64,000 nucleotides of DNA from Basidiobolus meristosporus CBS 931.73 (GCA_002104905.1 MCFE01000379.1:20254-84253); one strand, 5' to 3'; counted from the stretch's first letter, positions 4,897-64,000 are shown. Numbers and translations are program-made. The notes: generated by a model not told the origin, from the sequence alone.

Positions 4897-5245
4897 TGTT
4901 GTAAAAATTTGTATTTCCACCTAAATATTCACCTAACCTAGTCACTTAGATCATCACCTTCAAATCCCAGAGAATACTGACCAAATTCCTTGTTGGGATT
5001 TACTTAGAATATTTTCACCAAAATACCAGGTACCAAGAACATGAAAATTCTCAAAGTTGTCCAAACAACCCCAAACTCTGCACACAGGTACTTGGGACCT
5101 TTCTTAACCTATTCTACATGCTTGTAATGCCAAGACCAGGTAAAAGTATAAATACTACTTTTACATTCAATAAATCATTAAGTGAAAACCACATAATCTA
5201 CTTGTTCTCCCAATAACTTCCAATATCTCCAAGACTTTTACAACA
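4897..5245 (+). repeat. 349-bp copia LTR (3' LTR of copy A)
   Basis: TG...CA ends, preceded by the polypurine-like GCTGAGCAGGGG; similar to the other LTRs in the window. Confidence 0.95.
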
Positions 5246-7130: not shown

Positions 7131-10100
7131 TGTTGTAAGAGTCTTGGAGATATTGGAAGTGATTTGGAGGACAAGTAGATTATGTGGTTTTCACTTATTG
7201 ATTTATTGAATGTAAAAGTAGTATTTATACTTTTACCTGGTCTTGGCATTACAAACATGTAGAATTGGTTAAGGAAGGTCCCAAGAACATGTGTGCAAAG
7301 TTTGGGGCTGTTTGGACAACTTTGAGAATTTTCATGTTCTGGGTACCTGGTATTTTGGTGAAAATATTCTAAGTAAATCCCGACAAGGAATTTGGTCAGT
7401 ATTCTCTAGGATTTAAAGGTGATGATCTAAGTGACTAAGTTAGGTGAATATTTAGGTGGAAATACAAATTTTTACAACACTCCCACTCAGCTAAATGTTC
7501 ATACTGACTAGTCCTAATTTTGACCTAAGATATTCAAACTTGTCTCTAGCTAATGGTTTGGTAAATATGTCTGCAATCATTTCATCTGTAGAACAGTAAA
7601 CTAAGCTAACTAAGTTTCTCTCTATAGCTTCACGTATGAAATGATGTCTAATATCTATGTGCTTGGTTCTAGCATGAAAAGTTGGATTTCTACCTAGTTG
7701 TATACATCCTTGATTATCTTGAAATAAAGTAATAGGCGTTTTTTGACATAGGCCTAAATCTGCAAAGAGCTTTCTTAACCACATTGCTTCTTTTGTAGCT
7801 TCACAGGCTGCCATATACTCTGCCTCTGTAGTAGAAAGTGCTACAGTTGGTTGCTTTCTTGAATTCCATGAAATGGCTCCTTTACAGTAAAGAAAGGTGT
7901 ATCCTGTGGTGGATCTTCTGTCTTCTAAATTTTGTCCCCAATCAGCATCAGAGTATCCCACAAGATCCTGTTCTGAATCCTTATAAGTGTATTTTAAGCA
8001 GATATCAGCAGCTCCTTTTGGTATCTAAAAATCTGCTTAACGCTGCAATATGATCAGATCCATAATTCTGATTATGTTGGCTGACAACTCCCACTGAATA
8101 TGAGATATCTGGACGTGTTCCAAGCATGATATACATCAGACTGCCGATCATAGATTGATAAGGAAAGTCAGGGCTTTTGGATGACACTAAGCGCTCTTGA
8201 TTTAGTTGAGTTTTGACCAAGTTAAGGTTTGTCTCCATTGGGGTAGCTGCCGGTTTACAGTCTTCCATTTTGTACTTCTTTAGTATATCTTGAATATACT
8301 TGGATTGGCTTAGGGTTATAGTCTGGGTACTTCTGTCAATGGAGAACTTAATCCCTAAGTAGTAATTAGGTTCTCCTAGATTGGACATCATGAACTCCTT
8401 AGATAGGCTGGATTTAGTCACTTCCAATGCTTCTAGGTTATTGGCAGCTATAATAAGATCATCCACATATAGAGCTAATAGAACTGGATTTGCTCTATCT
8501 GGCTTATAGTATATACTATAGTCAGCATTACTCCTTTTGAAACTCAAAAATTCCAAATATGAATCTATCTTGCAATTCCAGGCTCTTGGTGATTGTTTGA
8601 GACCATATAGTGACTTTTTAAGCTTGCAGACCAAATGGGGGTTATCTTGGTCAACAAGCCCATCAGGCTGGTCCATATGCATGTCCTCATCAAGTTCTCC
8701 ATTCAAAAATGCAGTTTTTACATCCATTTGATGAATAAAAAACTTATATTTGGCTGCAATAGCCAATATTAATCTGATGGAATTAAACTTGGCTACCGGT
8801 GCAAAGGTCTCAGTATAGTCAAGTCCTTTTGTTTGAGAGTATCCTTTGGCTACAAGTCTTGCTTTGTATCTTTCAATTGTACCATCAGCCTTGTATTTTG
8901 TCTTGAAGACCCATCTGCATCCAATTGATTTTTGGTTGATTGGTAATTTGAATAAGTCCCAAGTTTGATTTTCCATCAGGGCCTGATATTCCTCAGTCAT
9001 TGCAGATCTCCAAAACTTCGTCTGAGGGCTATTTAGGGCCTCTTTTACAGTCTGGGGTTCATCCACATGGACTGAATAGGCATAGGCTAAGTTTGTACCC
9101 TCATTAATATAGTAATTTGGGCTATTTCTTGTCCGATTTGATCTCCAGGCATTTGATACTGGAATGATCACTTCTGGGATATTCCTGGGCACTGATTCTG
9201 GCTGAACCATGGTTGTAGAGTCCTCTGGAGTGAAAAAATTTTCATTGTTTTGCTCTGATTCAATCCTGACAAATGGTGGACTTGAGATCAAATTTTCGTC
9301 ATCATCTGATGTCATTTTTTGTGAAAATTTTGAATTTTCCTCAAACAACACATCCCTGGACTTGATAAGCTTCTTTTCTTTGGTATTGTAGAGTCTGTAT
9401 GCCTTACTCTCATTGCAGTAGCCCAAAAATATGCATTTTACACTTTTGGGCTCAAATTTTGACTGATTTCCGGCCAGTTTTTTTGGCATATGCTGTGCAC
9501 CCAAATATTCTTAGATGTTCTGCACTTGGTCTGTATCCATACCATGCTTCAAATGGAGTAGAATCATGAAGTATTCTGCTATAACTCCTATTTTTAAGGT
9601 ATACAGCAGTGGCAACTGATTCCGCCCAAAAATCATAGGATAATTTTTGATCATGGATCATAGATCTTCCATATCAATTATTGATCTGTTAGCTTGTTCT
9701 GCTACTCCATTTTGCTGTGGGGAGTATGGTACAGTAGTCTCTTGCTTTATCCCATGAATTTTGCAGAAGTGGATGAAGAGTTTTGAGGTATATTGTCCAC
9801 CATTGTCAGAGCGTATTTTCTTGATTTTTTCACCAGTTTCTCTCTCCACCATGGCTTTAAACTCCCTGAGCTTAGACAGAGCTTCTTCCTTTCTCTCCAT
9901 GAAGTAGACCCATGTGTATCTTGTATAATCATCAATAAAAGTGATTAAATACTTCATCCCGCCTAAGGATAAATTTTGCATAGGTCCACACAGATCTGAG
10001 TGAATTAAATCTAATTTTTTCTTAGTTTTGATTAACCCAGAGCTCTTGAACGGTTGTCTGGCTTGTTTCCCATTTATACAGGCTTCACAGTGCTCCAAAT

Positions 10101-11910: not shown

Positions 11911-12970
11911 TAAAGGGTCTTGAGTATCTCCTTTGTTATTCACTGTTGCTTTTTAAAGCATTCATTCTTCCTTCTTATTGGCATTTGATTTTCTTGATTC
12001 TTTGTTCAGGAGCCTTCCATATTTGTAAGTTAAGGTCAAGTTTTTAGTTCTGGACTCTATGGCAGATATAAGGTCCTAAGACTAGCCTGTTAGGCTACTC
12101 AAGATAGTAACTAGCACATCCTCATCAATGAATACAATGCCTACAGATTCCTAGAGGTAATGTGGCAAAGAAAGCATTTTAGTGACTAGGCTCATGTAAA
12201 AAGCCCCTACTACACAGTTTTGAGATCATCAGGGAGGTATTTAATTTGATAGGAGTCCAACTATTCATGTTGTAACTAAGCATATAGATATTAGACATTG
12301 TTTCATATGTGAGGATATACTGAATAACTTGGTTAATTTAGTTTACAGTCCTACAGATGAAATGACTGCTGACAAATTTACTAAACCATTAGCCAGAGAC
12401 ATATTTGAATATTCCAGATCACAACTAGGACTAGTTGATATGATATATAGTTGAGTGGGACTGTTATACAAATTTGCAATTGCACCTAAATACTCACCTG
12501 ACTTGGTCACTTAGACCAATATCTGCAGATCTTAGAGAATTCTGAGCAAATTCCTAGTCAGGATTTACTTGGAATAATCTCACCAAAGCATCAGGGACCC
12601 AGAAAATGAAATTTTGTTAAGTTGACCAAACAACCCCAAACTTTTTAAACATGTTCCAAGGAGCTTCCCAAGCATATTCCAAGTGTTTGGTTTGCCAAGA
12701 TTATGTAACAGTATAAGTACTACTTTCACATTCAATGAGTCATTAAGTAAAAGCCACATAATCTACATATTCTCCCAATCACTTTCAATATCTCCAAGAC
12801 TCTTACAACTTGGACAACTAATCAATATTTCATGTTCTGGGTACCTGACATCTTGGTAAAAATATTCCAAGCCCAACATGGAGTTTGGGCAGAACTATCC
12901 CAGATCTGTAGGCAATGCTCTAAGTGACCAAGCTAGGTGAACATCAGCTGTATTTACAAAATTTACAACA
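11911..12970. mobile_element. Degenerate copia fragments (gag piece on -, RNase H end plus diverged LTR 12462-12809 on +, partial LTR on - ending 12970)
   Basis: Recognisable similarity to gag (ttcttccttcttattggc), the RNase H end (actaaaccattagccagagac) and LTR motifs. Confidence 0.75.
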
Positions 12971-32414: not shown

Positions 32415-35400
32415 ATGAGCAAATTCAACATCCAGGACGAGCTGGAGAAGCTTCAGGACAACAGCGTCAAAATCGACAATGAGGTGGATGTCGCCAACTT
32501 GAATCCCGCTGCCGTGGAGACGTTTTTGAACGGTAGGGTCCCCACTTTTACGCTTCCTTTTGAAATGTCCATCTAACCTTTGGGATGAGCAGATGCTGTA
32601 GATAAAATCGAAGATAACTGCGAGTCTATCACCGACATGGAGGTGTTCGACTGCTTTCGCAGTTTCATCAAGTAAGGATCCATGGAAGCCATCTGTATTC
32701 ATGCACCAGTACTGATCTTCCACCAAATCAAATAGGTATTTCGACTTGCTAAAGCCACAACAGAGCAACAAGCTCTTGGACATCATACTGTCTGGATTCC
32801 AGACCCAAATCGATCAAACAGAGGAGGCAGCCTCGAGCAATAGTCCACCATACGACCAGCAAATCCAAGCGTTGATGATGTATGGATTTCTTCTTCATTG
32901 GCTCACGAGAGTGGCCGAAAAGAGGGCTATGGCCAAGAGCACCGCTGACAAGAATGCCGCTAAAGCCAAGAAGCCTCGCAGTAAGCGTGACGAAGAGCAA
33001 GAATCGTGGGACTGGATGCAGCATAAGCAAAAATCATTGGAATTGATGTCCAGAATGCTCGACATCAAACTGAACAAAATCTGCAGCTCCTCCCATGAGC
33101 GCGACACATGCGTCAATCTACTCACTCGCTCCGCCTATCAAATTCTCGAGAATCCAGATAACACGAAGGCCACACCAATCAAGCTCCAGGCGTACCACAT
33201 CATCAACAAGAGCGTTGTCGACTATGAACACTCATTTGCTGCGCAAACCACGATCTTGCAGAACCTCCAATACTATGAGCACTTAAGTGAGCCGATGGCT
33301 GAACTTCTACATTCGCTGGCCGAACAGTTTGAGTATCCACAACTCGCCGAAACCATCCTCCGTGAGGTCAGCAACAAGAATTTCCACACGAATGACAAGA
33401 ACGGGCCCAAGTCGTTCGCACGCTTCCTGGTTAAGCTCTCCGAACTCTCGCCGAAACTGATACTCAAGCAGATGGGGCTGTTGGTTCGTCAGCTGGACAG
33501 CGAATCTTATGTGCTCCGCTGCGCGTTGATCGAGATTGTAGGCCATACCATTCTGCACTTGGCCACGCTGGAACAGAACGACATTCAACACAAGCAGATC
33601 GATCACTACTTTGACGTCTTGGAGGAAAGATTTAGAGACCTGAATTCCATCTGTCGATCCAAGGTCTTGCAGGTACTGTCTCTACTTTGCGACAGCAAGG
33701 CCAAGTTCCCCAAGAGAAGACCTCGCCTGGTCGCCCTGGTTATCAGCCGGCTAGAGGACAAAAGCAGCAACGTCCGGAAAAATGCCATCAGGACACTTTC
33801 CAGGTTTTTGGAGACGCATCCCTTCCTGATTGAAGGGGGTGAGCTGTTCCTGGACACTTTCCAGAACAGACTGAACCAAATCGATCAGGAATTGAAGGAG
33901 ATTGTTATCCCCTCCCTGGGCAAACCCAATTCCAAGAAGAAGTCTAGAAAGCTATCTCACAAATCCACCGACGAAAGCCGTGACGATGATTCTTCCGAGC
34001 AGAGCAATGACGAGGAGGAGGAAGAAGAGGATCAAGCCGAGGGCGAACAAGACGGCTCCGATGAGCCTGCCCCTAACCCACTCATGAACCCAGAAACCGC
34101 CACCAAGGTGATTCAACTTCAGTTCCACAAACGCTACTACACAGACGCTGTTCAATTCGTCGAGAGCATCCATGAGGCGATTCCTGTACTCTGCCAGCTA
34201 CTCGGATCCACCACCAAGGCTGAGGTGATCGAAGCCATGGATTTCTTTGTTACCGCCACTAGATACAAGATCCAAATGGCCCAAGAGGGAATTCGTAAGA
34301 TGCTTCACTTGGTCTGGGTCAAGGATAACGGCAATGACGAAACCAAGGGGGTTCGAAGCCGCCTAATCGATTCCTTCCGTGCGCTGTATCTGACCAGCGA
34401 CCCAAGCCTTACTCCCAAGGAGAACGTCAATCTTTTCTCCAAAAATCTAATCGGTTTGACCCTGGACTCTTCTCTGGCAGAGCTGACCTCCTTGGAGGAG
34501 ATTCTGAGCATCATCATGGCCGAGGGATATATTCCTGAAGAGCTGGTGTCTAAATTATGGGGCGTGTACGGCATCACGAAGAAGGAAATCCAAAGATCCA
34601 ACGTCGCGGCGCCATCATCATTTTGGGAATGCTAGCCAAGGCCAAGAAAGAGATCATCTCGGAGAGAATCGATCTTCTACTTAAGATTGGTATGGGCGAT
34701 TTGGGCAGGGATGACTTGGGCTTGGCAAAATACACCTGCCTGGCGCTGCAGAGACTAGGTGAGGTGAAGAGAGGCAAGGGTCTGGTCAACACTGGCAACA
34801 TTCGTCTTCCTTTGTCGCATCCGATCTTCAAGAAGATTGAGGAGTTCATTGAGCAAGACTCCGACTCCAGTGAGTGGTCTACCGTTGCGGAGCAAGCCGT
34901 CAACACCGTCTATCTACTCTGCGACCACCCCGATGTTTTGTGTGGAAACATCATCAAAGCTAAAGCACGCCAAGTGTTTGCTAAAAGCCCAGCAGCCGAA
35001 GCGGAGTCCGAATCAGAAACGAATGACGACTCCAAGCACAACGCCCAAACCACCTCATTGCTCTCGCAACTGCTCTTCATTGTAGGCCACGTTGCCATGA
35101 AGCAGATCGTTCATCTAGAGGTCATCGAGAGCGCCTGGAAAAAGAGAAAGGCCGAGGCCAAGCAGTCGGCCAGCAAGAAGCCAGATGATGATGAGTTGGA
35201 TCAGGTGGTTGGATCGACCGAAGATGATGTTGCCGACGTGATCAGCCATGTTCGTGAACGGGAATTGCTTTTCGGAGCCAAATCGTTGTTGGCAACATTC
35301 GGGCCCATGGTCGTACACATCTGCGCAAACAACACCACCTACCCCGACCGCTTGCTTCAAATCAATGCAGCATTGGCACTGGCGAAGTTCATGTGCGTCA

Positions 35401-36308
35401 GCAGTGACTTTTGTGAGAAACACCTTCAGCTGCTCTTCACCATGCTGGAGAAATCTGACGACCCAATTGTTCGAAGCAACATTGTGATCGCACTTGGCGA
35501 TGTGGCGGTCTGCTTCAATACCCTGGTTGGCGAGAACATCGCATTCCTTTACAAACGCCTCCGGGATCCAGACAGTTCTGTGAAGAAGAACACGTTAATG
35601 GTGCTTACGCATCTAATCCTCAACGGAATGATCAAGGTGAAAGGACAGCTGGGCGAGATGGCCAAATGCTTGGAAAACCCCGATCAGAGAATCAGCGATC
35701 TCGCTCGCTTGTTCTTCACTGAACTGGCTTCTAAGGATAACGCCGTCTACAATAACCTCCCCGACATGATCAGTAGCTTATCATCGGGCAACAACGCCGT
35801 CGATGAGGAATCGTTCAAGCGGATCATGAAGTTCTTGTTTGAGTTCATCAAGGACAAAGAAAGGCAAACCGAGAACATCGTGGAGAAACTGTGCCTCCGT
35901 TTCCGCAACACTGATGATCAGCGTCAGTGGAAGGATATCTCGTATTGCCTTTCGTTGGTCCAGTACCGATCGGACAGAACTTTCAAGAAACTGCTCGACG
36001 GTATGGTGTACTTCCATGATAAGCTCCACAACAACACCGTCCATCACCACATGATGGAGATTGTTACCAAGGCCAGGTCTCAAGTGTGGCAACGAGACAA
36101 ATCGATGGTGGATGAATTCGAGAGTAAGATCGCGGAAATCAGAAAGTTCGCCGAGAAGCCAAGCGATGAGCTGGACGACGAAGATATTGCCGCCATCATC
36201 GGCGAACCAACGGAGGAGGAGCAAGAGAGCGAGGCCGAGGAATCCGACGAAGAATCTGGCGAGACCAAACAGGAATTGGAGACCAGTGAGATCCTCGCCT
36301 CAGCCTAG
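32415..36308 (+). CDS. YCS4: Condensin I non-SMC HEAT subunit (Cnd1/YCS4/NCAPD2); apparent 1-bp deletion at about 34590
   Basis: HEAT-repeat motifs RLEDKSSNVRKNAI, RSNIVIALGD, LTHLILNGMIKVKGQL and LFFTELASKDNAVYN. Two short 5' exons; the ORFs 32746-34635 and 34557-36308 join if CC at 34590 is read CCC (EIPKIQRRGAIIIL). Confidence 0.92.
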
Positions 36309-43672: not shown

Positions 43673-43744
43673 GCCTGCTTAGCGCAGTGGTAGCGCGTCA
43701 GTCTCGTAAACTGAAGGTCGCCAGTTCAATCCTGGCAGTAGGCA
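43673..43744 (+). tRNA. tRNA with anticodon CGT (Thr by anticodon) on an elongator-Met-like body
   Basis: Cloverleaf: acceptor GCCTGCT/AGTAGGC, D arm GCGC/GCGC, anticodon arm TCAGT-CTCGTAA-ACTGA, T arm GCCAG-TTCAATC-CTGGC; T5 terminator at 43748. Confidence 0.93.
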
Positions 43745-43881
43745 ATATTTTTCCGAAATTCATCAAATTAGAGGATTAAAGAATTTTTGATTGGACATGT
43801 GGCTTAAATTTACTTTGAATCCCATAAGTTTTCAGCTCCATGTAATAGAAGACCTCTTATACAAATGTGAACATAGTCGAA

Positions 43882-43913
43882 TGTCAAGTCCTTCGGGACC
43901 TCTGACACTTGAA

Positions 43914-43944
<31 letters not shown>

Positions 43945-44006
43945 GGCCCCTGCACAAGGATGACACGTAAATCTTGAGTGGACACCTCTTCGGAGGACAT
44001 TTTTTT
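43882..44006 (+). ncRNA. U6: U6 spliceosomal snRNA
   Basis: 5' UUCG hairpin GTCC-TTCG-GGAC, core AATTGGAACGATACAGAGAAGATTAGCATGGCCCCTGCACAAGGATGACACG and a T7 terminator. The 5' end is approximate. Confidence 0.96.
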
Positions 44007-49399: not shown

Positions 49400-52300
49400 T
49401 CACAACGATGAGTCCTGCAATATCAACATCAAGATATCGTGAACTATCCAAGGGAAAGATAAGTAGGCTGGTTTGCTCTCTTGGCCAGGGTTATTACATG
49501 GCAATGCACTGCAAGGCTGCTGGTTCTTTTGAAGCAATGTTTCAGTTGGATGACACGTCACGTAGTACCAAGCGCTGGCCTTTCTTTTCCGCTCCAAGAT
49601 TGCTCCATCCGCATCATTTACTGCTCCATTAAACCGATCACGAAATATTCTCCAAACTGTTCTGATGACGTTGCTGAGGGTTTCTTTAAGTAAATGTCTG
49701 TCTTTCCTACGGATAGCCAAGGAAGGGAAGCACTGAACGCACCCCGAGACTAGTTCAGCCTCAGTTTTGATTTCATGCTGGTTCATGATATCGGAGATGG
49801 TCAGGTCATACTCATGCTTCAGCTGCCTGGCCTCTGCCAAGTATTCTGCGTATCCCGGCACGATCATTCTTTCATCAAAGTGAACATCCTCTGGACAATT
49901 GGCCAAGGAGCACTCGGATATCTGGCGTTTCAAGGACTCACTCCTGTACATCTCACCCAGGGCATTCGGGGAAGGGTAGGATTTTCTTGGTAATTTGTTC
50001 ATATAATCAGGCCAGTGTTTCGGAATCAGGTCGGGCCGCAGATCAACCGGGATCCCTGTCTTCATGAAATTTACTGCTTTGGTATGAAGCTTAGCCAGCT
50101 TGATACACATGGGGCTCACTGTGATATCTGCGGACTGGTCGGCCCAGGCCAAATGAGCGTTGGCAATCTGGGCCAAATTATTGGTTCTCATAAAATTGAT
50201 GAAGAAGTCCACGGTGTCGTTGATGGTGATGGGCTGGCCAGATTTGCCCTTTTGCTTGCTGTAGTTCAACGAGGGTTGCTTGTGTAATGGAAACAACCGC
50301 TTATCCCAGATAACCGTAAATGTTTCGCCGTCCAGATCGCTGTTACTTTGACTTGGTAGACCGTAGGCAGCAGAAGTAGAGAATGCTACACAATTCACGA
50401 GAGCATGAAGCTTTGGGCAATCAACAGCTTCAACCATTTGCATATCCCCTGGATGTAGATATGGATTTCTAACAACCAACGCTGGGCCTACATAGTTTTT
50501 CACAGTAGCGGGGTTTTGAGGATCCGTGTATCGAACAAAGATTTGGTTTTTCTTCAACGTATTCGTGTCATCTATGACGCCGATCAAGTGGGCCCCCTGT
50601 TTGATGGGAACTCTGGCTCGTTCCTGGATATCCCGGAGAGCCTGGTTTCGGAGTAAACCCAGAAGTCGCTTGGTGAAAGTGTCTCCTGACCGCAGGAAAC
50701 CTGCGGTAATCATATCTCCCAATGCATCACCTATCCAACTGATGCGGTAGTGAAGGGCAAGAAACTCCGAAGCCTGTGCTTGATCGCCAAGAATTTTATC
50801 CGTCAATTGCAGGTGTTCTTCTTGCATATGCATAAATATACCATCCGAGACCCCCACGGTAGAAAGCAGTGCGACGAGCTGTCGGTTCAGGTAAGCTGGC
50901 AGGAACTTGGCAGCTCGGACGATCTCCAAGTCGGAATGTTCCGAACTGAACTTCCTTTGGCTTGGGCGTAAGTGCACAAGCTTTCCACTCATCTGATCAT
51001 CAGGTACGACCATAAGAACCCCCTTGTATCCACCAAAGCGGATCTGAAATGCACCAGGGATTACTTTCGGAGAATATTGACCGGAGATTTCTGCAGCCAA
51101 CGACATTGCAATTCGGCCGATCCCATTCGTGTATACATGGCCATTACGAGTGATATCGGGGATTTTTTTTACCTGTTCCGCAGTCAGGGTTTTTACTGCT
51201 CGAGTGCTGGAAAGGGAAAGGCCCATACATGCTGCATGCTTGGCAACATTACCGATATTACTGAAGTCGCCCATCCACTTGCGAATGAAATCTGCATCTA
51301 TACCCTCGGGCGTATCCGCAAAGAACCAGCACCTGTGTTCACGAAGTTGTGTGGATGAGAAAGCCAGAAATCGGTAATGCCGCTTGCCAATATGGAATCC
51401 TTCGGTCAATGTCTCCTCAAAACTGTCGAAGATGGCTTGATTCAGATGGTTATTAGGGCCTACTTTCTCGAAGTGTTCCTCTGAAAAGGTGACTTGGATG
51501 AAGTATTGTTGGTATTGATGAAAATGCCGTAGCACTCGGTTCGATGGCTCCAAAGATGGTGGCAGAAGGAGCATCTTGCCGGGAGTAATGTATGCTCGAT
51601 ACATCCACACGTTTTGCTCGGGGGTTCCCTCACGATTGATCAGATCAATTCCGAGCTTTGGTAATATTTCTTGAGTGTAGGCTAAGGGGTCCTGGATCAG
51701 GCTTTTAGCCGCCATCATATTCGTCAGCACATTCTTGGCAATCCCGACATCAAGATCATTCAAGAACGTAACCCACTCTTGCGTTACGTTCCCCATGGCC
51801 AGTTTCTGCGCACATACTAAGCATTCCACCAGGTAAGCTACCTCGAACCGGAGTGACGAGTGAATGTCAACAATCAAGTGATTCGACCAATTCGTTTCGA
51901 TAGAAAGTGTGGAATCGAAATCGGTAGAAATTAGCCCGCAACCCGTCATACTGTCAAGAGTATCTTGGAATGATTCTCCCCATTGGTTATGACTTGGAAT
52001 GTTGACGCAGTAGGTGGAGAAGTCACCAAGTTTAACTCTGTTGGCATTCTCCCCCTGTTTATCAACAATATATGGGACACGCATCCATGAATCTTCTTCA
52101 CTCCAACTGTCCGAAGATGGAGATTCCATTTCCTGTCTCCGCCACAAGAAAGGGCAGTGAGCAAGGTTGAAATACAGGAAATACGTATTTTCTTCTCCTC
52201 TATTCATGATTGTACGGTTCCGGGCGTCATCGAATCTTACTCCAATCCTATAGTCGTCGTTCATGTGGTGAAATTTGAAAAAGAGAAGCTGTCTCTCCAC

Positions 52301-52826
52301 ATTCACCTCAATAGTACAGCTGCCTGACGGTCTCCAAACCCTCAGAAATTTGCTGCTGTTTACCAAAACACCCATGTCAAGGCAAGTTACTTCAGAACGG
52401 AAAAACAATTTCGTATATTCTCCCCTTTCTTGACTTTCCAGACACATGGCGGTTTTGGTGGTGAAATCCATATCAAGAAATCCATTTTTCTTCCCCGGAG
52501 CACCAGGTTGAAGGCCCTGATTCATAAAATCAAGAGTAGGTGGCGGTGGGCTAAATACAACTATGGCGGTTTTCTTTCTTCTTTGTGCGTTTATCACCCT
52601 GCAGCTGCTAACATTACCCCACTTGGAGAAATACTCTCGGATATCTGCAGCTTCCATCGCAATTGGTAGACCTTTGACATAGATACTCAATTCGTTGAAC
52701 AAACGAGGGTTAGTGCATGTTTTCTTCAAACTTCGCACCTGCTTTCCACTTTTCTTCAACAGGATTAGTGCTATGTAACCTCTCATACTGAACAATAGCC
52801 CTTACCTTCTCATTTGGTTTGTACAT
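49400..52826 (-). CDS. Eukaryotic RNA-dependent RNA polymerase (RNAi type) with N-terminal RRM; catalytic motif reads DLDGE
   Basis: RRM (IYVKGLP), FLAFSSTQLR, AFQIRFGGYKG, LNRQL, RNPYLHPGD and DLDGE. A probable 21-nt first exon lies at 52806-52826. Confidence 0.93.
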
Positions 52827-55574: not shown

Positions 55575-57358
55575 TGCTATAAAATTTCGTAATTCCACCT
55601 AAATATTCACCTAACAAAGTCACTTAGATCATTACCTTCAAATCCTAGAGAATACTGACCAAATTCCTTGTGGGGATTTACTTGGAATATTTTCCCAGAA
55701 CATGAAAATTAGATAAGTTATCCAAACAGCCCCAAACTTTACTCACATGTTTTTGGGACCTTCCTTAACCTATTCTACATGTTTGTTTTGTCAGGACCAT
55801 GTAAAAGTATAAATACTTATCAAGTGAGAACCACAAAATCTACATGTCCTCCCAATCACTTCCAATATCTCCAAGACACTTGCAACAGGTTATGAGCCCC
55901 AAGCTGTCACTCTCTGCAATGTCTACTACTGCTATTACTGGAATTCTTCCCTCTGCTGAAAAGTTGGATGGCTCTAACTACCAAGTGAGGAAGGAGAAGA
56001 TGAAGATGCTGCTACAAGAAAGAGGCCTTTAGGATATTGCCATGGGAGAAGAATGCCCTCCTAAAAATATGGGAGAGGGAGCCTTAAAGTACCAGAAGAA
56101 AGAACAAAGTGCCTTTAACTGCATTTGCCTCAATGCTAAGGACAAATTGCTAATTCAATGCTCAAGAGAAAAAATGGCAAAGAATGCCCAGAAGCCATAA
56201 GAAGACACCTATCAGTCATGTTCAGCTGCCAAGAAAATATATTTGAGACATAAATTCTTTACTACAAAGATGCAGCCAGGATAAGAAATGAAAAATCTAA
56301 TTAACAGAATTACCTTGCTGGTAGATGCAATGGAATCTGTAGGCATATCAACTACTGATGAGGATGTAATAGTTACTATCCTGAATAGCCTGACAGACAA
56401 TTTTCAGGGCCTTATATCAGCCCTAGAGTCCAGAGCTGAAAATTTGACCTTAAATTACATAAATGGAAGGCTCCTGGATGAAGAATTAAGAAAATCAAGA
56501 GCAAATAAGAAGGAAGAAGAAAATGCTTTAATAAGCAATGATAACCAACAAAGGAGGTACCCAAGACCCTACAAAGGCAACAGCAACCTGTTTTGCAACT
56601 ACTGCAAAAGGAATGGACACACATCAGACCAGTGTCTCAACAAGTGAGATAATCAGTAAAAGAAGCCTGAATATGGAAATGCGGCAACAACTGAAGATAG
56701 ACTATTCATATCTGCACTAAATATGACCGCAAACAAGGATTATCAGATGTGGTATATTGACTCTGGAGCATCTCAACACTTTACACACCAAAAAGAACTT
56801 TTTACCTAATATCAAGAAATTCCAATTAAAAAGGTTTTCATGGGTGACAATAGAACACTTGATGCAGTGGGAGAAGGAACCATCCAAGTAAACACTAGAA
56901 GCAATGAAGGAAGCCATACAATGACCTTCAAAAAATTCTCTATGTACCAGGAATAACCAAGAACCTACTGTCTGCAAGCAAGGCCACAGCAGAAATACTC
57001 AGTTTCAGCTTTGACAATTCTGGATGCAGGATCACTGATCAAAATGGTGCCCATATTGCTTTGGGTATCCGTGATCAGAATCTATGCAAATTGACTTATA
57101 TTCCATCATATCTGGAAGCCACTATAAGTAACTGAAATGAGGAAACACCAATGCTTTGGCACAGGAGATTTGGGCACATCAATTTTGATTATTTGTGCAA
57201 AATGATTGAAGATCAGCTCATTTCTGGAGTAGAAATTGATCCCCCAACTAATTTGGAGCACTGTGAAGCCTGCATATATGGGAAACAAGCCAGACAACCA
57301 TTCAAGAGCTCTGGGTTAATCAAAACTAAGAAAAAATTAGATCTAATCCACTTAGATC
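55575..57358 (+). mobile_element. Copia copy D (LTR 55575-55887, PBS, degenerate gag-PR-IN), interrupted by copy E
   Basis: Same family as copies A-C; many stops; sequence stops at the IN motif LIHSD where an opposite-strand LTR begins. Confidence 0.9.
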
Positions 57359-57782
57359 TGCTGTGAGAGTCTTGGAGATGTTGGAAGTGATTGGGAGGAC
57401 AAGTAGATTATGCAGTTTGCATTTAATGATTTGTTGAATGTAAAGTAGCATTTATACTTTTACATGGCCTTGGCATTGCAAACATATAGAATAGGCTAAG
57501 GAAGGTCTCAAGAGCATGTGTGCAAAGTCTGGGGCTGTTTGGACAACTTTGAGAATTTTCATGTCCTAGGTACCTAGTATTTTGGTGAAAATATTTTAAG
57601 TAAATCCCAACAAGGAATTTGGTCAGTATTCTCTAGGATTTGAAGGTAATGATCAAAGTGACTAAGTTAGTTGAATATTTAGGTGGAATTACAAGTTTTT
57701 ACAACACGCCCACTCAGCTAAGTGCTCATACTGACTAGTCCTAATTTTGACCTAAGATATTCAAACTTGTCTCTAGCTAATA
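57359..57782 (-). mobile_element. Copia copy E: 3' LTR (57359-57706), PPT and RNase H end, broken at about 57782
   Basis: 348-bp LTR, then CGCCCACTCAGC and the RNase H end matching 7480-7556, replaced abruptly by TTAGGG-like sequence. Confidence 0.9.
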
Positions 57783-60700
57783 GTTAGGGTTAAGGGGGAG
57801 ACAGTCACCAACAGGTGAAATCTTTATTTCAGTTGAAACAAAGAAGCCAGTGCTACTGTTGCAGCTTTGATACAAGAGTGTGTAGCTGAGGGGAATTTGT
57901 TGGTGAGTCAATAAGAAGTGATAATAGCTCTTCAGTGCTCAAGACACTGTTCAGTGGGAAGGGGGTAGCAAGAGAGGTAAAAATGACTTGTGAACAACAT
58001 TAATGAGGGGAATGTGATAAGGATTGATATTCATCATAAAGGGAGTGTGCTGCTGCAGATATTGCTGCCAAAGGTCTGTCAAGTACTTCAGGTAGGCCAG
58101 CTTGGGTTTTTCTGACTGCAGAATATGGTGAGCAAACTTTTGACTTCAGGATCTCCAAGTATAGTTCTCCAGCAGGAGCCAGGTGTAGTGTGGTATGTTC
58201 TCTTCCAGGCCTTAATCAGTGGGTTGTTGCAGTTGTGAAGTCTGAGATATATTCAGGTTCTGAGGTAGAGAAGTCTGATCCTACAGGGCATAAACCCAAA
58301 AGCACCAAGAATAGCATGTCTCTAGGGGCATTCAGGCAAATGAGGCACCAAGGAGGTAATGCACCATACTGCAAGCTTGTCAAGCATAGTGTAGTCTCTA
58401 GAAGTAAGAGAGAGAAGTAGTAAGCCAAATTCCAGGACAGGGAAGACAAACTGCTTGAGTAGAAGGAGGCAGCTGGGAGCTGAAGTTGTAGGAGGAGTAA
58501 CAGCCGGTAGCTTGTGGAGTGCCTATCTTGCCAGGATAATTCTCTTCTTCAGGTGTGCTCCAGAGTCTAGTCCAGTAGGAAGGAAAGGAAAGCCAAGATA
58601 TGTAGCAGAAACCTGAGCAGGTAGAGTGGAGTTCTCCAAGTTGATGGGAGAGCCCAAAGGTACTGTCTTTGCCATGGAAAGCTGGAGATTATTCTTCTGC
58701 AGATACTGGTGGATGGTCTGGGAGTCTTGTTGCAAATTGGAGGAGGATATTCTGATGTCATCAGCAAAGAGAGTAACCAGGCAGTCAGCTGAGAGTCTTG
58801 GGAAATCATTCAGGAAGATGGCAAACAGTATAGGACCAAGCACAGAGCCTTGAACCACTCCATTAGGAACTGAGAACACAGCTAATTGCTCACTTGGGTG
58901 CAGAATTCTTGCTTGTGGATCCAGAAACAGAGACCTGACAAGGAGGGTGAGAGAGGTACTGGAGAAGCATTGCAACTTGGACCAAAGCAGATTTCTGTCA
59001 ACTGAATCAAAGGCCTTAGTAATATCAAACAGAACAGAGGGATACTTGCACTGGAGAGAGTGATCATGGCTAAGTATGACTGCATATTACAAGGAGAGGC
59101 CAGGAACAAAGCCAAATTGTGCAGGGTGAAACTTGAGGGAGTCAGAGTAGAGCTCCTGAGCAAGCAGAAGCTCAAACACCTTTCTGCAGGTGGGCAGCAG
59201 AGATATTGGCCTATAGGAGCTAGGATCCAGGTGCTTTCCTTTACCCTTGTACAGTGGCAGAACATTGGCAAAGGACCATTCCTCAGGAGTAGAAAGCTGG
59301 GCTGAGCATTGCTGAAGCAGTGGAAGCAGAAGTGCAGACATGGCCTTGGTACTAGTCTTCAGAAGCTCATAGGAGATTGTGTCCACACCTGGGGCAGTAG
59401 AGTTGGGAAGCCTCTTGAGCACATTATGGATTATCTCTTGATCAGGTGCAAGTGGGGTTGGCACAGTCTTGAAGTCATGATGAAAGCCAGGAGTTGAGCA
59501 CTGCTTTATAGAGAAGAAGATGTTGGCCAGCTGTTCTGTTGAAGGTAACTTCCTGGAAGAGGGCCTCATTGCCCTGTAGAGTCTTGACACTGTTCTTGTT
59601 ATAGAGTTGGAAGATTGCAGAGGCAAAGAACTCATAATATGGTCCCAGAGCTGAGTATGCAGAGTGTGGTGAATTGCCTTGGAGTGTTGTATTGCTGTCA
59701 GGAGGAGTTTCTCTGTTTTTGGGCTAGGGAAACTCAGATAGCTTTTTTGCAGGGCTGAAACAATGGATTCCCATTTTCTTGAAGTAACAGCAGTAGTCTT
59801 GCATGGCAGTGAGAGAGAGGCAGAGACCAGAATCAAATACTTCACAAAGAGCCAGGCATAGTTGAGATTTTCTGGCAGAGAAAGTAGCAAACTGGCAAGC
59901 TTCAAGTAGTTCACAAAGTCTTTGTTATGATTCTTGGTAGCTCTGTGGGTGAGCACAGTAAGTTTTGGCAGCTTCTTCTTCACAACTGGTTGCATAGAAA
60001 GGGACCAGGCTGGGTGGTCAGAGGCTCTCAAGGTTCCTAGCTCAGCTCCAGAGAATTGCTTGACTTCATTCACAAAGTAGAGGGCAGCAGCAGAAGGGCA
60101 GATCCAGTCAACACATCTTATCTCAGATTGAGCATCTAGTGCTAGCAGATGGCTTTCTCTCAGGAAGTTCAGTAGGAATGTAGACCTTGGTTCATTCTTG
60201 CAGTCAGAGTAGTCTTGTTCACAGGATGGGGAATGCTGAGATCTCCAAGCAAGATAACATGTGCTGATATAGATTGCTGGTATTGCTGAACTTTCTGGCA
60301 TACAACTTGCACTTCCTGAAGGGGGAGACTTGGAGGCAGATAGCAGAGCACCAGACTGATAGTTGGCAACTGGAGAGCAGCACAGTAAGGGGAGTAAAGA
60401 GGAACACAGAGCTGAGGAGTATTGATGGTTGTTGTGCATCAACATTTAAAACTTAGCCAATTTTACTCCGTTTGAAAATCTGGTACCCTAACTGATTTTC
60501 CCTAACCCAAACATAACAAATCCCAGTTACAGTTTATTTTATCCCACCTCAGAATCTATTTTTAGCTATCACACCTGATCTATTTTCAAATGGTCATTAC
60601 GTTATCAACCTATCTGCCAAGCCTTCCCAGGTGATTAGTCATCTGAGATCTATCCAACCATGGTGCAGTTGCCAATACATCAGTTGATTGATGATGTAAT

Positions 60701-61308
60701 TTTCATTTATCTTATGCACCTATGAGCACCCAAATTGATTTCAATCAATCCAGTCCCTTGGCGCTTAATAATTCAACTTGATCAGAAAAGTATAAATAAA
60801 GTTTACTGAACCTTTTGGTTTAGTGTGTGTCTCAACAAAATTAAGATTCTGTCTCAGCAAAAATAAGAATCCAACAATTCCGTTCCAGTTTCTATCCAAG
60901 CCTAGTATATCTAGCATTCCAAAGAACACCAAGCCTAGCCTGCCTAGCAAACAAATATCATTGCCTTTATAGCCAACCCAGCTATATCCAAGACCAATAT
61001 TAGATCAGAATCTTCCTGCTAATATTTCCGCCACTCTCTGACAATTCTAAGATTCTGCACTTAATTGTCCCTTTGGTTCAGTTAAACCATTCAAGATCTT
61101 TGTTACACTTTCTCTTGGATACAACAATGGTAGAAGAGATGAATGTGATAGAGGAGGTATTCTTTGTTCCAGGAGTAGAAAAGCAATATATATTAGTCAA
61201 AAGTGTAGAGGGTAGCTGGACCTCAATCAAACACAGGAGGGAAAATCTTGAAAGTAGTCTCTCTAGAGTTGGTCTTGATGGCTGTATGCTTTTGCAGCTA
61301 AGCAACTC
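57783..61308 (-). mobile_element. Non-LTR (LINE) APE-RT element, degenerate, with 3' hairpin and telomeric tail
   Basis: RT motifs TAPGVD, YRPISLL..RKVFE, QFGF, QGSVLGP, LFADD and YLG; APE-like motifs YLPPS, ILLGDL, VDWI and SDHP. A probable APE N-terminus (LLCLIEV) lies at 61150-61305. Confidence 0.85.
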
Positions 61309-61350
61309 TTAGGGTTAGGGGAGGGAAAGTCATCAAGGTAGGTGAAATCT
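61309..61350 (-). repeat. Tail-only mini unit (telomeric repeats plus 3' hairpin, loop type TACCTT)
   Basis: ttagggttaggggagggaaagtcatcaaggtaggtgaaatct. Confidence 0.85.
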
Positions 61351-61889
61351 TAGGGTTAGGGTTAGGGTAGGGGGAGGAAAGTCACCAAGTGGTGAAATCT
61401 TTATTTACTTATGACAAGTATCTAAAGAAGCCAAGTTAATCTGAAGTTTTTCCTAGAAAGCTAGGTCTGAGAGATATCTTCCTGGTAAGCCAGGTCTGAG
61501 AGTTGAGAAGCTGAGTGGTACTATATTTCCTAGTTAGCTAGGTCTGAGAGTGGTTTCCTGGAAAGCCAGGCCTGAGAAGTGAGAATCTGAATATATCTGA
61601 GCTAAGTTATACTGGTTTGCGGTAGCTGAATTGTGGCCGGAATGGCCAGTAGACTGGGGGAACTGAGAGGAATTTCTGGGCAATCACTGGCCAAATTTAC
61701 TAGGCAAATCTGGCCAATTAGCATTTCAAGGATTTCGGCCAATCAGAGCCTTTACTTTGCCCTATGGTTGATCAAGCCATCTCCCAATGAGCACACATCA
61801 ATTTATTAATCAAATTTTGCTGGATCCAGGATTTGAACCCACAACCATGGGTATGGAAGGGTTAGGGATAACCACAAGGCTAAGTGTTC
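61351..61889 (-). mobile_element. tRNA-headed SINE-like unit, copy 1
   Basis: A-box-like TAGCCTTGTGG (61872-61882) and B-box GGTTCAAATCC (61829-61839), non-coding body, shared 3' hairpin and TAACCC tail; about 97.5% identical to copy 2. Confidence 0.8.
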
Positions 61890-61940
61890 TTGGTTGGGTT
61901 AGGGTTAGGGGGGGAGGAAAGTCACCAAGTGGTGAAATCT
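61890..61940 (-). repeat. Tail-only mini unit (telomeric repeats plus 3' hairpin, loop type ACTT)
   Basis: ggttgggttagggttagggggggaggaaagtcaccaagtggtgaaatct. Confidence 0.85.
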
Positions 61941-62552
61941 TAGGGGAGGGAAAGTCACCAAGGTAGGTGAAATCTTTATTTGATTTCAGACAAGTCTAAC
62001 TACAAATAAAGAAGCCAGCTGGGAATAGAAGATTCCCAAAGTAAACACTAAGTTGAATATGAATAAATCTAAGCTAAAGTTAAGGCAGTATCCCAGAGTA
62101 CACTGGAGTTCAGGTTCATGGGGGAGTGAAGTAGATAAGCTTGAGAAATATAATAATCTTTAAGGAAGTGGATAACAGCAGGTGAAGGGGAGTTTTTGAT
62201 AAGTGAAGTGAATCTTGAGAGCAGAGATTCCTCTAATGAGAAGGTCTTGTAAACTGGAGAATCAGGAAACTCTTTGAAGGCATGGTCAGTAGGTTCCCAG
62301 TAAAACTGGTCAGAGACATTTTGAGAGAATTGTGTTGCAATACTTTTGTCAAGTACTACCTCCAGAGTGTGATGGTTGATAAATCTCATGTTAACAATTT
62401 TGGATAAATTGTAACCTTGTTGCTTGAGATACATCCTATGCTCAGATATGGGAATAAACTCCACATTGGCAAAGTAGCAGACAGTCCAGTCAGTAGCAGG
62501 AGGTAAATCAGAATTGGCAGGAAACTTTCTTTTAGTCTTGGGAGGAGCAGCA
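61941..62552 (-). mobile_element. Unit carrying a 5'-open ORF (about 160 codons, ORF1/gag-like by inference) plus the shared 3' tail
   Basis: Open frame from about 62550 to the stop at 62069 (AAPPKTKRK...WTVCYFANVEFIPISEHRMYLKQQGYNLSKIVNMRFINHHTLEVVL...), followed by the same hairpin and tail as the LINE. Confidence 0.6.
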
Positions 62553-63089
62553 CTTAGGGTTAGGGTAGGGGGGGAGGAAAGTCACCAAGTGGTGAAATCT
62601 TTATTTACTTATGACAAGCATCTAAAGAAGCCAAGTTAATCTGAAGTAATTCCTAGAAAGCTAGGTCTGAGAGATATCTTCCTGGTAAGCCAGGTCTGAG
62701 AGTTGAGAAGCTGAGTGGTACTATATTTCCTAGTTAGCTAGGTCTGAGAGAGGTTTCCTGGAAAGCCAGGCCTGAGAAGTGAGAATCTGAATATATCTGA
62801 GCTAAGTTATCATGGTTTGCGGTAGCTGAATTGTGGCCGGAATGGCCAGTAGACTGGGGGAACTGAGATGTATTTCTGGGCGATCACTGGCCAAATTTAC
62901 TAGGCAAATCTGGCCAATTAGCATTTCAAGGATTTCAGCCAATCAGAGCCTTTACTTTGCCCGATGGTTGATCAAGCCATCTCCCAATGAGCACACATCA
63001 ATTTATTGATCAAATTTTGCTGGATCCAGGATTTGAACCCACAACCATGGGTATGGAAGGGTTAGGGATAACCACAAGGCTAAGTGTTC
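62553..63089 (-). mobile_element. tRNA-headed SINE-like unit, copy 2
   Basis: Offset exactly 1200 bp from copy 1; about 12 mismatches over 490 bp by eye. Confidence 0.8.
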
Positions 63090-64000
63090 TTGGTTAGGGG
63101 GGGAGACAGTCACCAACAGGTGAAATCTTTATTTCAGTTGAAACAAAGAAGCCAGCGCTACTGTTGTAGCTTTGATACAAGAGTGTATAGCTGAGGGGAA
63201 TTTGTAGGTAAGTTAATAAGAAGTGATGATAGTTCTTCAGTGCTCAAGACACTGTTCAGTGGGAAGGGGGGTAGCAAGAGAGGTAAGAATGACTTGTGAA
63301 CAACATTAATGAGGGGAATGTGATAAGGATTGATATTCATCATAAAGGGAGTGTGCTGCTGCAGATATTGCTGCCAAAGGTCTGTCAAGTACTTCAGGTA
63401 GGCCAGCTTGGGTTTTTCTGACTGCAGAATATAGTGAGCAAACTTCTTGACTTCAGGATCTCCAAGTATAGTTCTCCAGCAGGAGTCAGGTGTTGTGTGG
63501 TGTGTTCTCTTCCAGGCCTTAATCAGTGGGTTGTTGCAGTTGTGAAGTCTGAGGTATAATCTGGTTCTAAGGTAGAGAAGTCTGATCTTATAGGGCATAA
63601 ACCCAAAAGCACCAAGAATAGCATGTCTGTAGGGGCATTCAGGCAAATGAGGCACCAAGGAGGTAATGCACCATACTGCAAACTTGTCAAGCTTAGTGCA
63701 GTCTCTAGAAGTAAGAGAGAGAAGTGGTAAGCCAAATTCCAGGACAGGGAAGACAAACTGCTTGAGTAGAAGGAGGCAGCTGGGAGCTGAAGTTGTAGGA
63801 GGAGTAACAGCCAGTAGCTTGTGGAGTGCCTGTCTTGCCAGGATAATTCTCTTCTTCAGGTGTGCTCCAGAGTCTAGTCCAGTAGGAAGGAAAGGAAAGC
63901 CAAGATATGTAGCAGAAACCTGAGCAGGTAGAGTGGAGTTCTCCAAGTTGATGGGAGAGCCCAAAGGTACTGTCTTTGCAATGGAAAGCTGGAGATTATT
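63090..64000 (-). mobile_element. Second copy of the APE-RT LINE (3' part; continues beyond the window)
   Basis: Highly similar to 57783-58690; open ORF 63158-63964 (RT C-terminus); same UGUU-loop hairpin and tail. Confidence 0.9.

Follow-up and report, generated by a model that had tools for sequence, protein, structure and literature searches.

Polarised arrays of an APE-type LINE and partner elements with a common telomere-complementary tail at chromosome ends of Basidiobolus meristosporus

Retrotransposons specialised for telomeres have been described in a small number of lineages: Drosophila, Bombyx and Tribolium, Giardia, Chlorella, Magnaporthe, rotifers, and an anole (PMC10088271). The Drosophila elements HeT-A, TART, and TAHRE resemble the locus described here in several respects: their terminal arrays are polarised and head-to-tail, the 5' end of each element lying distally; a gag-only (ORF1-only) partner accompanies the autonomous elements; broken ends are healed; and 5' truncation is variable, without TSDs. 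However, they belong to the Jockey clade, carry poly(A) tails, and replace telomerase. Bombyx TRAS1 and SART1 (R1 clade) are likewise APE-type LINEs that specialise in telomeric repeats. They reside within long TTAGG tracts and have poly(A) tails and a Myb-like domain; no SINE or ORF1-only partners are known for them.

Another parallel is provided by MoTeR1 and MoTeR2 of Magnaporthe, fungal telomeric non-LTR elements, autonomous and non-autonomous, with common ends, whose arrays run head to tail with the 5' ends towards the chromosome end and half a telomere repeat or more between units (PMC7367193). In contrast to the present case, MoTeR1 encodes a restriction-enzyme-like endonuclease of the CRE/SLACS type and has telomere-like repeats at its 5' terminus, and the system has two components and no SINE. 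The Penelope-like elements (PLEs) Athena and Coprina are described as lying at chromosome termini and having, as in our case, RNA 3' ends with reverse-complement telomeric repeats able to pair with the G-overhang (bioRxiv 10.1101/2021.04.23.441226). Their PLE reverse transcriptases lack an endonuclease, whereas the LINE described below has a conserved APE and an ORF1. Finally, stringent LINE-SINE pairs, such as UnaL2 and UnaSINE1 of eel, also have a 3' stem-loop and a short terminal repeat common to the LINE and a short non-coding partner, and the tail is therefore taken to be recognised by the reverse transcriptase. Pairs of the eel type are scattered through the genome, with a tail repeat that has no relation to telomeres.

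We analysed a 64,000-nt stretch of Basidiobolus meristosporus CBS 931.73 (MCFE01000379.1:20254-84253), hereafter the window. Its terminal part, 57784-64000, consists of seven head-to-tail units, all on the minus strand and in the order given by a preliminary description (LINE, tail-only, SINE, tail-only, ORF1-like unit, SINE, LINE). On the plus strand every unit starts with 5-25 nt of TTAGGG-like sequence followed by a G-run and a conserved 3' module, and the (GG)TTAGGG and G-run reported earlier are present in all seven. The junction tracts in the window are 7-25 nt long; neither poly(A) tails nor TSDs are visible at its unit junctions, again as reported. A hairpin motif has six matches in the window and TTAGGGTTAGGG has five, with zero expected in both cases, so that a chance origin of these repeats is excluded. 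The features are as follows.

57359-57785, plus strand: proximal array edge, formed by a copia LTR-like repeat that is cut mid-sequence
57784-61308, minus strand: U1, LINE-A, ORF2-only, 5'-truncated; aligns to L014:1501-4149 and 4145-4324
57784-57850, minus strand: shared 3' module, example in U1
60430-61126, no strand assigned: foreign 697-bp insert within U1, solo-LTR-like
61309-61349, minus strand: U2, tail-only, 3' end of the family B type
61350-61894, minus strand: U3, SINE-like, full-length, ~540 nt; 94-97% identity to copies in L015-L018
61895-61939, minus strand: U4, tail-only, 3' end of the SINE type
61940-62553, minus strand: U5, family B (ORF1-only), 5'-truncated
62554-63093, minus strand: U6, SINE-like, full-length; 96-98% identity to copies in L015, L016, and L018
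63094-64000, minus strand: U7, LINE-A, 3' 0.9 kb, cut by the contig end

The tail-only unit U2 ends immediately past the hairpin (...GAAATC, then directly TTAGGG), and U4 stops at the identical position. One correction to the preliminary description concerns U1: its foreign 697-bp insert has TG...CA termini and a 5-bp TSD (ATGGT), and it interrupts the LINE-A alignment with a 5-bp overlap. Other copies of this insert exist, with many differing flanks in read contigs, and it looks like a solo LTR.

A ~70-nt 3' module is common to the LINEs, the SINE-like unit, and family B, which bears out the earlier proposal of non-autonomous partners. As RNA, it is predicted to comprise SL1 (A/U-rich, with AAUAAAGA), SL2 (UCACC-loop-GGUGA), a pyrimidine spacer, a C-run, and UAACCC; the example at 57784-57850 folds with -15.8 kcal/mol (z = -3.6). 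The module core is invariant in 12 tail lineages. Variants of the hairpin, one compensatory (ACACC/GGTGT) and two non-compensatory (ACACC/GGTGG), are too few to count as covariation support. The predicted RNA ends are C5-9(UAACCC)1-3, complementary to the telomeric G-strand. No RNA sequencing run contains this stretch, and the read contigs used below are of DNA. Kin elements with the same tail and ORF2 identity of 47-80% are present in nine other samples, one contig showing stacking; the tail pattern had zero matches in JGI metagenomes.

With 764 candidate copies, the LINE-A family is 4.4-4.7 kb long, and the identity of copies to the family majority is 99-100%. A single frame holds ORF1, a UGA-CUA stop, and ORF2; both the A and the C lineages conserve the UGA-CUN stop context, and ORF2 may be made through stop-codon readthrough. 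U1 is truncated at the ORF1/ORF2 border, 14 nt short of the ORF1 stop, and retains an RVT_1 match in the ORF at 58523-58975. With 97.2% identity to the family majority and with frameshifts, it is older than its relatives; U7 has 99.8% identity. The C-terminal domain of ORF1 was modelled (pLDDT 75) as a beta-alpha-beta-beta-alpha-beta unit with helices. Because the PDB yields weak matches for it to RRM/ferredoxin-like folds (E of at least 0.05), we offer the label "RRM-like" only as a suggestion.

The preliminary description had called this element an APE-type LINE, and the domain analysis agrees. The APE domain of ORF2 is divergent (weak Exo_endo_phos_2 match in Pfam, E 3.5e-4), with conserved N, D(E), GDLN-H, VDW, and SDH motifs, and is followed by RVT_1 (E 2e-25); the best PDB sequence match is human L1 ORF2p (E 4e-13). 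An AlphaFold model of the endonuclease (pLDDT 81) has an APE fold. Given also the variable 5' truncation, the fixed 3' end, and the absence of LTRs, LINE-A is an APE-type non-LTR retrotransposon. The endonuclease is N-terminal, unlike the REL-ENDO domain C-terminal to the reverse transcriptase in elements of the MoTeR type, and Pfam gave no match to the REL-ENDO family in ORF2. The LINE-like reverse transcriptase and the conserved APE also set LINE-A apart from endonuclease-deficient PLEs primed at telomeres, although the tail is of their kind. Features of the R1 clade (TRAS/SART) are likewise missing: Pfam finds no Myb-like domain in ORF2, there is no poly(A), and no junction tract exceeds 25 nt. 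Beyond close kin, which number only a handful, large-database and exhaustive searches yielded generic APE-RT LINEs at 30-36% identity in the reverse transcriptase core; Pfam analysis of nine of these gave a Myb domain in one protein and otherwise nothing diagnostic.

The partner elements can be characterised in less detail. U5 retains an ORF remnant of 131 aa (62069-62464) with the stop ~100 nt before the tail. Longer copies (L014:123-1500 and L018:1-960), themselves incomplete, give the family B ORF as 242 aa from the ATG in L018. Family B ORFs are homologous to the C-terminal part of the LINE-A ORF1 protein, with 35% identity across 134-157 aa and E values from 1e-12 to 1e-19, the 242-aa ORF reaching 1e-19. 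On this homology, the "ORF1-like unit" of the preliminary description represents a genuine ORF1-only family comparable to HeT-A: as read from its incomplete copies, it encodes an ORF1/Gag homologue only, with no reverse transcriptase, and its 3' end is common with that of the autonomous elements.

The SINE-like unit is ~530-540 nt long, and nine of ten copies among the loci examined are full length; SINE-type tails account for ~30 of the first 100 tail matches. U3 carries box A/B-like strings in its head, sub-repeats of 77 nt internally, and the 3' module of the LINE type. In the head, TAGCCTTGTGG matches box A at 10 of 11 positions and GGTTCAAATCC resembles box B, with spacing as in tRNA genes; these box-like strings alone hint at possible polymerase III transcription. 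A tRNA-derived head was considered and dropped: neither ARAGORN (default and relaxed) nor the Rfam tRNA model (E<=10) finds a tRNA in it. The earlier designation as a SINE is thus retained for a short, non-coding, multicopy unit with a 3' end common to the LINE, and qualified for its head, which no tRNA model matches.

The link to chromosome ends is observed in several ways. The array in the window reaches the end of its contig, and in three sister contigs (C482, C212, and C952) similar arrays lead straight into terminal (TTAGGG)35+ tracts of 210-220 nt. The outermost unit under the telomere is a full-length LINE-A 5' end on one contig and a SINE cut at nt 346 on another. Genome-wide, the tail motif has 1522 matches on the plus strand and 138 on the minus strand (control, 1 and 0), clustered at contig ends, plus-strand matches at right ends and minus-strand matches at left ends, with the G-strand outwards; the uniform polarity and enrichment at ends that the preliminary description named as support for its model are thereby borne out by the tail motif. 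Sequences of LINE-A, LINE-C (a second LINE family), SINE, or B were not found in 74 kb of adjacent non-terminal DNA. As far as clustering at contig ends, the telomere-capped contigs, and this stretch of arm reach, they place the elements in the class of telomere-specific retrotransposons, defined by copies at ends only and with uniform polarity. An ordered array could in principle be mimicked by repeats collapsed or chained at contig ends during assembly, given that the array in the window stops within a repeat at the contig end and the contigs are oddly co-oriented (1522:138). Such an artefact is highly improbable, as three contigs pass through such arrays to terminal telomere tracts, the element-to-tail joints are present in short-read contigs of the same sample, and independent assemblies of the nine other samples contain the same tail, one of them with stacking. 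Most probably, a community of non-LTR retroelements specialised for telomeres, primed through their RNA tails at G-strand 3' ends, has built a chromosome-end array of which the units in the window form the inner part. Compared with the Drosophila elements, this set has tails of a C-run and UAACCC, a true (TTAGGG)n cap, and a SINE-like partner; compared with MoTeR, it has an APE-type endonuclease, the telomeric repeat at the 3' end of the RNA, and no fewer than four coexisting families.

Short-read contigs of the same sample contain >300 joints. All listed forward joints, and most go-back joints, lead from an arbitrary internal position to the start of another unit's tail; thus, 5' ends are variable and 3' ends fixed. 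Identical junction contexts were observed on two contigs (L016:5409 and L018:6191), and therefore recombination between ends, or the presence of haplotigs, also spreads arrays. One may ask whether the subtelomeric blocks are mainly amplified and exchanged by recombination or break-induced replication with little ongoing retrotransposition, which the common junction contexts would fit and which has a precedent in Magnaporthe, where MoTeR arrays grow and shrink by such routes (PMC7367193). We consider this very unlikely, because the order of units varies from array to array, the >300 different joints have individual 5' truncation points, 99-100% identical copies occur on many contigs with differing neighbours, and tail-only units, like junctions with microhomology, are hallmarks of reverse transcription.

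The proximal edges of the arrays bear on the nature of the primer. The preliminary description placed the start of the array at a cut copia copy; the cut-off is indeed seen at ~57785, but the cut piece is the LTR-like repeat of that copy, broken off mid-sequence, and the tail of the first element adjoins it directly. Other copies of the repeat (window 7131-7554, 4822-5245, and 12388-12807; L003) run on with ...AATGGTTTGGTAAATATG, whereas the edge copy switches to TTAGGGTTAAGGGGG; the edge repeat and the first tail have GGTT microhomology in common. Two different LTR-like repeats are capped directly by element tails at four different internal cut points, in line with the previously suggested addition to breaks.

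A different origin of the same picture is strict site-specific insertion, in which the APE would nick the G-strand within double-stranded TTAGGG repeats, whether of the telomere or of resident tails, and ordinary TPRT would follow as in TRAS and SART, with no free end. The 1-3 telomeric repeats of each unit are possible targets, and insertion into a resident tail predicts the same head-to-tail arrangement and precise SINE 5' ends. The catalytic motifs of the APE are invariant in six lineages (the A and C lineages and kin) that are mutually 40-54% identical, so the enzyme is under selection and probably used, and the top PDB match of its model is the TRAS1 endonuclease (1wdu). However, the model matches TRAS1 EN and APE1 at E ~1e-9, with TRAS1 barely ahead of APE1 and ExoIII, and Pfam found no Myb-like domain between the endonuclease and the reverse transcriptase. 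Moreover, the internal junction tracts (n=36) are 5-25 nt long (median 13), so that telomere-like sequence at these junctions never exceeds 25 nt, although terminal tracts reach 210 nt or more; arrays have their first units on non-telomeric repeats cut at differing points, with <2.5 telomeric repeats between. We regard strict site-specific insertion as a serious possibility, though we doubt it. A model of pure end priming, for its part, does not need a conserved endonuclease, which counts against that model.

In the explanation that we consider probable, autonomous LINE-A and LINE-C would encode ORF1 and, via UGA-CUA readthrough, the APE-RT ORF2, whose enzyme would presumably copy SINE-like RNA and B RNA in trans. 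The 3'-OH of the G-strand would pair with the UAACCC tail and prime reverse transcription; here we lean towards a natural, short, or broken end as the usual primer rather than an endonuclease nick deep in duplex telomere. The cDNA would lengthen the chromosome end outwards, leaving the element 5' end distal, the geometry of Drosophila HeT-A/TART and MoTeR, and the outermost unit would be capped by (TTAGGG)n of the telomerase type. Template jumps from RNA to RNA may then be the source of tail-only units and one-repeat junctions. In three of four arrays, age declines from the proximal to the distal copies; the fourth, with a younger copy proximal, counts against this explanation. A bolder reading, somewhat less likely than not, is that the LINE lineage has converged on the mechanism of telomerase and Athena-type elements, so that its RNA and those of its SINE-like and gag-only partners are copied directly onto free or broken ends, with template jumps chaining several RNAs in one event. 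In a fungus with several hundred array-bearing contig ends, the community would then be a second system of end healing and extension beside telomerase and would include the first telomere-specialised SINE.

Our literature search found no paper on such a telomeric retroelement set in fungi, in agreement with the preliminary description, and no telomeric example of a non-coding SINE-like partner. Features otherwise seen separately are combined here: the LINE is of the APE type, like TRAS/SART, its RNA tail is complementary to the telomere, like that of Athena/Coprina, and it is joined by a gag-only partner resembling HeT-A and by a SINE-like partner. The conserved UGA-CUA junction further provides a LINE whose ORF2 may arise by stop-codon readthrough. 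The host is an early-diverging, culturable fungus whose chromosome ends keep canonical TTAGGG caps; the family, with copies 99-100% identical, is very young, and the questions raised are therefore directly testable. The system bears on the need for an endonuclease in end addition, on how retroelements and telomerase share chromosome ends, and on how a SINE may gain target specificity through a borrowed tail.

The window was located on contig C678, which is 84,253 bases long, so window base 64000 is the right end of the contig and the array reaches it (the genome assembly comprises 1366 contigs and 89.5 Mb). The preliminary description of seven minus-strand units arranged head to tail was confirmed by reading positions 57000-64000 and by alignment to copies on other contigs. 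Its "ORF1-like unit" is U5, a member of a family, B, that codes for an ORF1 homologue alone.

Units of the array (window positions)
57784-61308, minus: U1, LINE-A, 5'-truncated
61309-61349, minus: U2, tail-only, B-type
61350-61894, minus: U3, SINE-like
61895-61939, minus: U4, tail-only, SINE-type
61940-62553, minus: U5, family B, 5'-truncated
62554-63093, minus: U6, SINE-like
63094-64000, minus: U7, LINE-A 3' part, ended by the contig end

On the plus strand, units start with 7-25 nt of TTAGGG-like sequence and a G-run, followed by a purine-rich spacer of 5-7 nt and the motif GTCACC-loop-GGTGAAATC (6 matches vs 0 expected). The string TTAGGGTTAGGG has 5 matches, again with 0 expected. U1 is split at 60430-61126 by a solo-LTR-like insert of 697 bp whose termini are TG..CA and whose TSD is ATGGT. 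This repeat recurs in or beside arrays (window 60430-61126 and the fetched stretches L006:1-572, L015:1-446, and L014:2-124); in L014 it is broken off at about position 330, with a family-B tail as a cap. A copia copy had been described as cut off at the array start. The cut is real, but it falls in a copia copy's LTR-like repeat (57359-57785), which breaks off mid-sequence: other copies go on with ...AATGGTTTGGTAAATATG, and here TTAGGGTTAAGGGGG follows the common GGTT.

All families share one RNA 3' end, GGCUUCUUU...AAAUAAAGAUU(U/A)CACC-loop-GGUG-Y-rich-C5-9-(UAACCC)1-3. It is predicted to fold into an A/U-rich stem-loop of 10-12 bp, a CACC/GGUG stem-loop of 4-5 bp, and an unpaired tail (z = -3.3 to -4.1 for A, B, and two kin elements). 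The core of this module is invariant across 12 tail lineages, and the loops are family-specific. Classified by loop sequence, the first 100 tail matches in the genome include 48 of type A, 30 SINE, 13 B, and 7 C. A canonical AAUAAA lies in the first stem-loop, 35-45 nt upstream of the element end, in every family and all kin (for example, window 57823-57835, minus strand); it may have a role in 3'-end formation or may merely be part of the conserved stem.

The proposed link of these elements to chromosome ends is supported. A genome search for the tail core gave 1522 matches on the plus strand and 138 on the minus strand (the reversed control gave 1 and 0), tightly clustered at high contig coordinates on plus and at low ones on minus. 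In contigs of known length, LINE-A copies are without exception no more than about 10 kb away from a contig end. Three contigs (C482, C212, and C952) terminate in 210-220 nt of perfect TTAGGG repeats, into which the array leads directly; in C212 the last unit before these repeats is a full-length LINE-A 5' end, and in C952 it is a SINE cut at nt 346. In 74 kb of adjoining non-terminal DNA, no copy of the four families was found. As written, about 11/12 of array-bearing contigs carry the array at the right end (tails 1522 vs 138; LINE-A matches 37 vs 3), probably a by-product of the assembler emitting dead-end paths.

Full-length LINE-A copies are 4.4-4.7 kb long (L014:1501-5917; L016:727-5400). 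In the 5' UTR, an internal AACCCTAACCCTAA follows one or two CpG-rich monomers, each about 105 bp long. Tandem monomers of about 105 bp with CCATCCATCC runs open both LINE-A (L016:5150-5400, minus strand) and family B (L014:912-1500, minus strand), differ in number among copies of either family, and recall the monomeric promoters of LINEs. [quoted passage not shown] It ends in ...SA-UGA-CUA, and the frame runs on unchanged past this single UGA into ORF2 (922 aa) (L014:4339-4341, minus strand). The GCC/GCA-UGA-CUN junction is present in all kin of both LINE lineages (L020:2112-2114, L021:2669-2671, L027:1666-1668, L028:1449-1451, and L026 near 905), with the context ...(S)A-UGA-CU(A/C/U) retained. 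Because this in-frame context is conserved and ORF2 has no ATG near its start, programmed stop-codon readthrough yielding an ORF1-ORF2 fusion is suggested. The second autonomous family, LINE-C (L017:6270-9116, 949 aa), is 47% identical to LINE-A.

[quoted passage not shown] About 100 nt separate the stop codon from the downstream tail, and tandem 107-bp monomers, which include a CCTAACCC string, are present in the 5' region. Since the B ORF1 is more distant from the A and C types (35% and 26% identity) than these are from each other (43%), B is ruled out as a recent deletion derivative. The SINE-like unit is non-coding and about 530-540 nt long. Its head carries TAGCCTTGTGG and GGTTCAAATCC, box A-like and box B-like strings spaced as in tRNA; CCCTAACCC, equal to one and a half telomere repeats, lies between them (window 63040-63075 and 61840-61875, minus strand). 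The head gave no match to tRNA models, and Pol III transcription of the unit is putative.

The units were probably joined by priming at 3' ends of the G-strand, somewhat more likely those of chromosome ends than of nicks. Such a 3' end would pair with the CCCUAA tail of the RNA and prime reverse transcription. The geometry fits: along the G-strand come TTAGGG, the G-run, and the element in reverse complement, its 5' end being distal. A strong rival is site-specific insertion, in which the APE endonuclease nicks duplex repeats. The APE domain of ORF2 is divergent, but LLLNCNS, LIDV, GDLNxxHPEN, RCVDW, and SDH are conserved and mostly invariant between lineages sharing only 40-54% identity. Its structure model (pLDDT 81) has the TRAS1 endonuclease 1wdu as the top Foldseek match (E 8e-10), with APE1 and ExoIII little behind; an RVT_1 domain lies downstream, and the best PDB sequence match is human L1 ORF2p. 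Such strict conservation of the active site counts against purely endonuclease-independent addition, and the same picture would arise if elements inserted into the short repeats that resident tails carry; site-specific insertion is therefore retained. Three findings favor a primer at an end that is natural, short, or broken. Internal junction tracts stay at 5-25 nt (36/36) despite terminal tracts of at least 210 nt. In four independent cases, an LTR-like repeat is cut, each time at a different internal point, and has as its cap a tail of fewer than 2.5 telomeric repeats; the window, L012, and L019 have one and the same LTR-like repeat, L014 a different one. The full-length SINE 5' end (...CTTGG) passes directly into the TTAGGGG of the next tail in 6/8 joints, and tail-only units all stop at GAAATC|TTAGGG, as would be expected from microhomology priming or end-to-end template jumps.

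LINE-A copies are 99-100% identical to the majority sequence, and within arrays copy age tends to rise from the distal to the proximal side.

Identity of LINE-A copies to the majority sequence, proximal to distal
Window: 97.2% (copy also struck by the LTR element), 99.8%
C482: 89%, 99.5%, 100%
C217: 98.9%, 100%
C1012: 100%, 99.1% (order reversed)

Short-read contigs of the source sample contain more than 300 joints; those listed lead from an arbitrary internal position in LINE-A, SINE, or B to exactly where the tail of another unit begins, 0-26 nt of filler lying between. Only relatives at 85-95% identity are present in a second sample that bears the same species label. Nine unrelated ENA/Logan samples yielded kin elements at 47-80% ORF2 identity, which share the ORF1-UGA-ORF2 layout and the tail; in L021 three tails are stacked. 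Apart from these kin, the lineage was isolated in an exhaustive search.

The subtelomeric arm in the window contains copia elements and ordinary eukaryotic genes with few introns; housekeeping-type genes (Cnd1 and RRM-RdRP) lie within 25 kb of the array.

Host genes of the arm (window positions)
32746-36308, plus: condensin subunit Cnd1, two overlapping ORFs
43673-44004, both plus: tRNA-Thr(CGT), 139 bp upstream of U6 snRNA (78.8 bits)
49400-52795, minus: RRM-RdRP, 1131 aa

The CpG observed/expected ratio is 0.05 in the array (57784-64000), 0.15 in a copia, and 0.76-0.87 in host genes (49400-52795 and 32746-36308), and it reaches 1.27 over the initial 300 nt of full-length LINE-A (L016:5100-5400); GpC is normal in all four. 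Low CpG with normal GpC points to long-term CpG loss from the repeats, with the CpG-rich putative promoter of LINE-A spared.

A literature search found no comparable system, and a 2023 survey of telomeric retroelements includes neither such a system nor a SINE (PMC10088271). We thus found no described precedent for the combination of an APE LINE, telomere-complement tails, and gag-only and SINE-like partners. A fungal parallel, MoTeR1/2, also forms head-to-tail arrays with distal 5' ends and short telomere tracts between units (PMC7367193), but has a REL endonuclease instead of APE. The SINE-like partner is a further distinguishing feature, as are 3' tails made of the telomere complement rather than poly(A), known elsewhere from endonuclease-deficient Penelope-like elements. 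With HeT-A, TART, and TAHRE the system shares polarised terminal arrays, a gag-only partner, and end healing.
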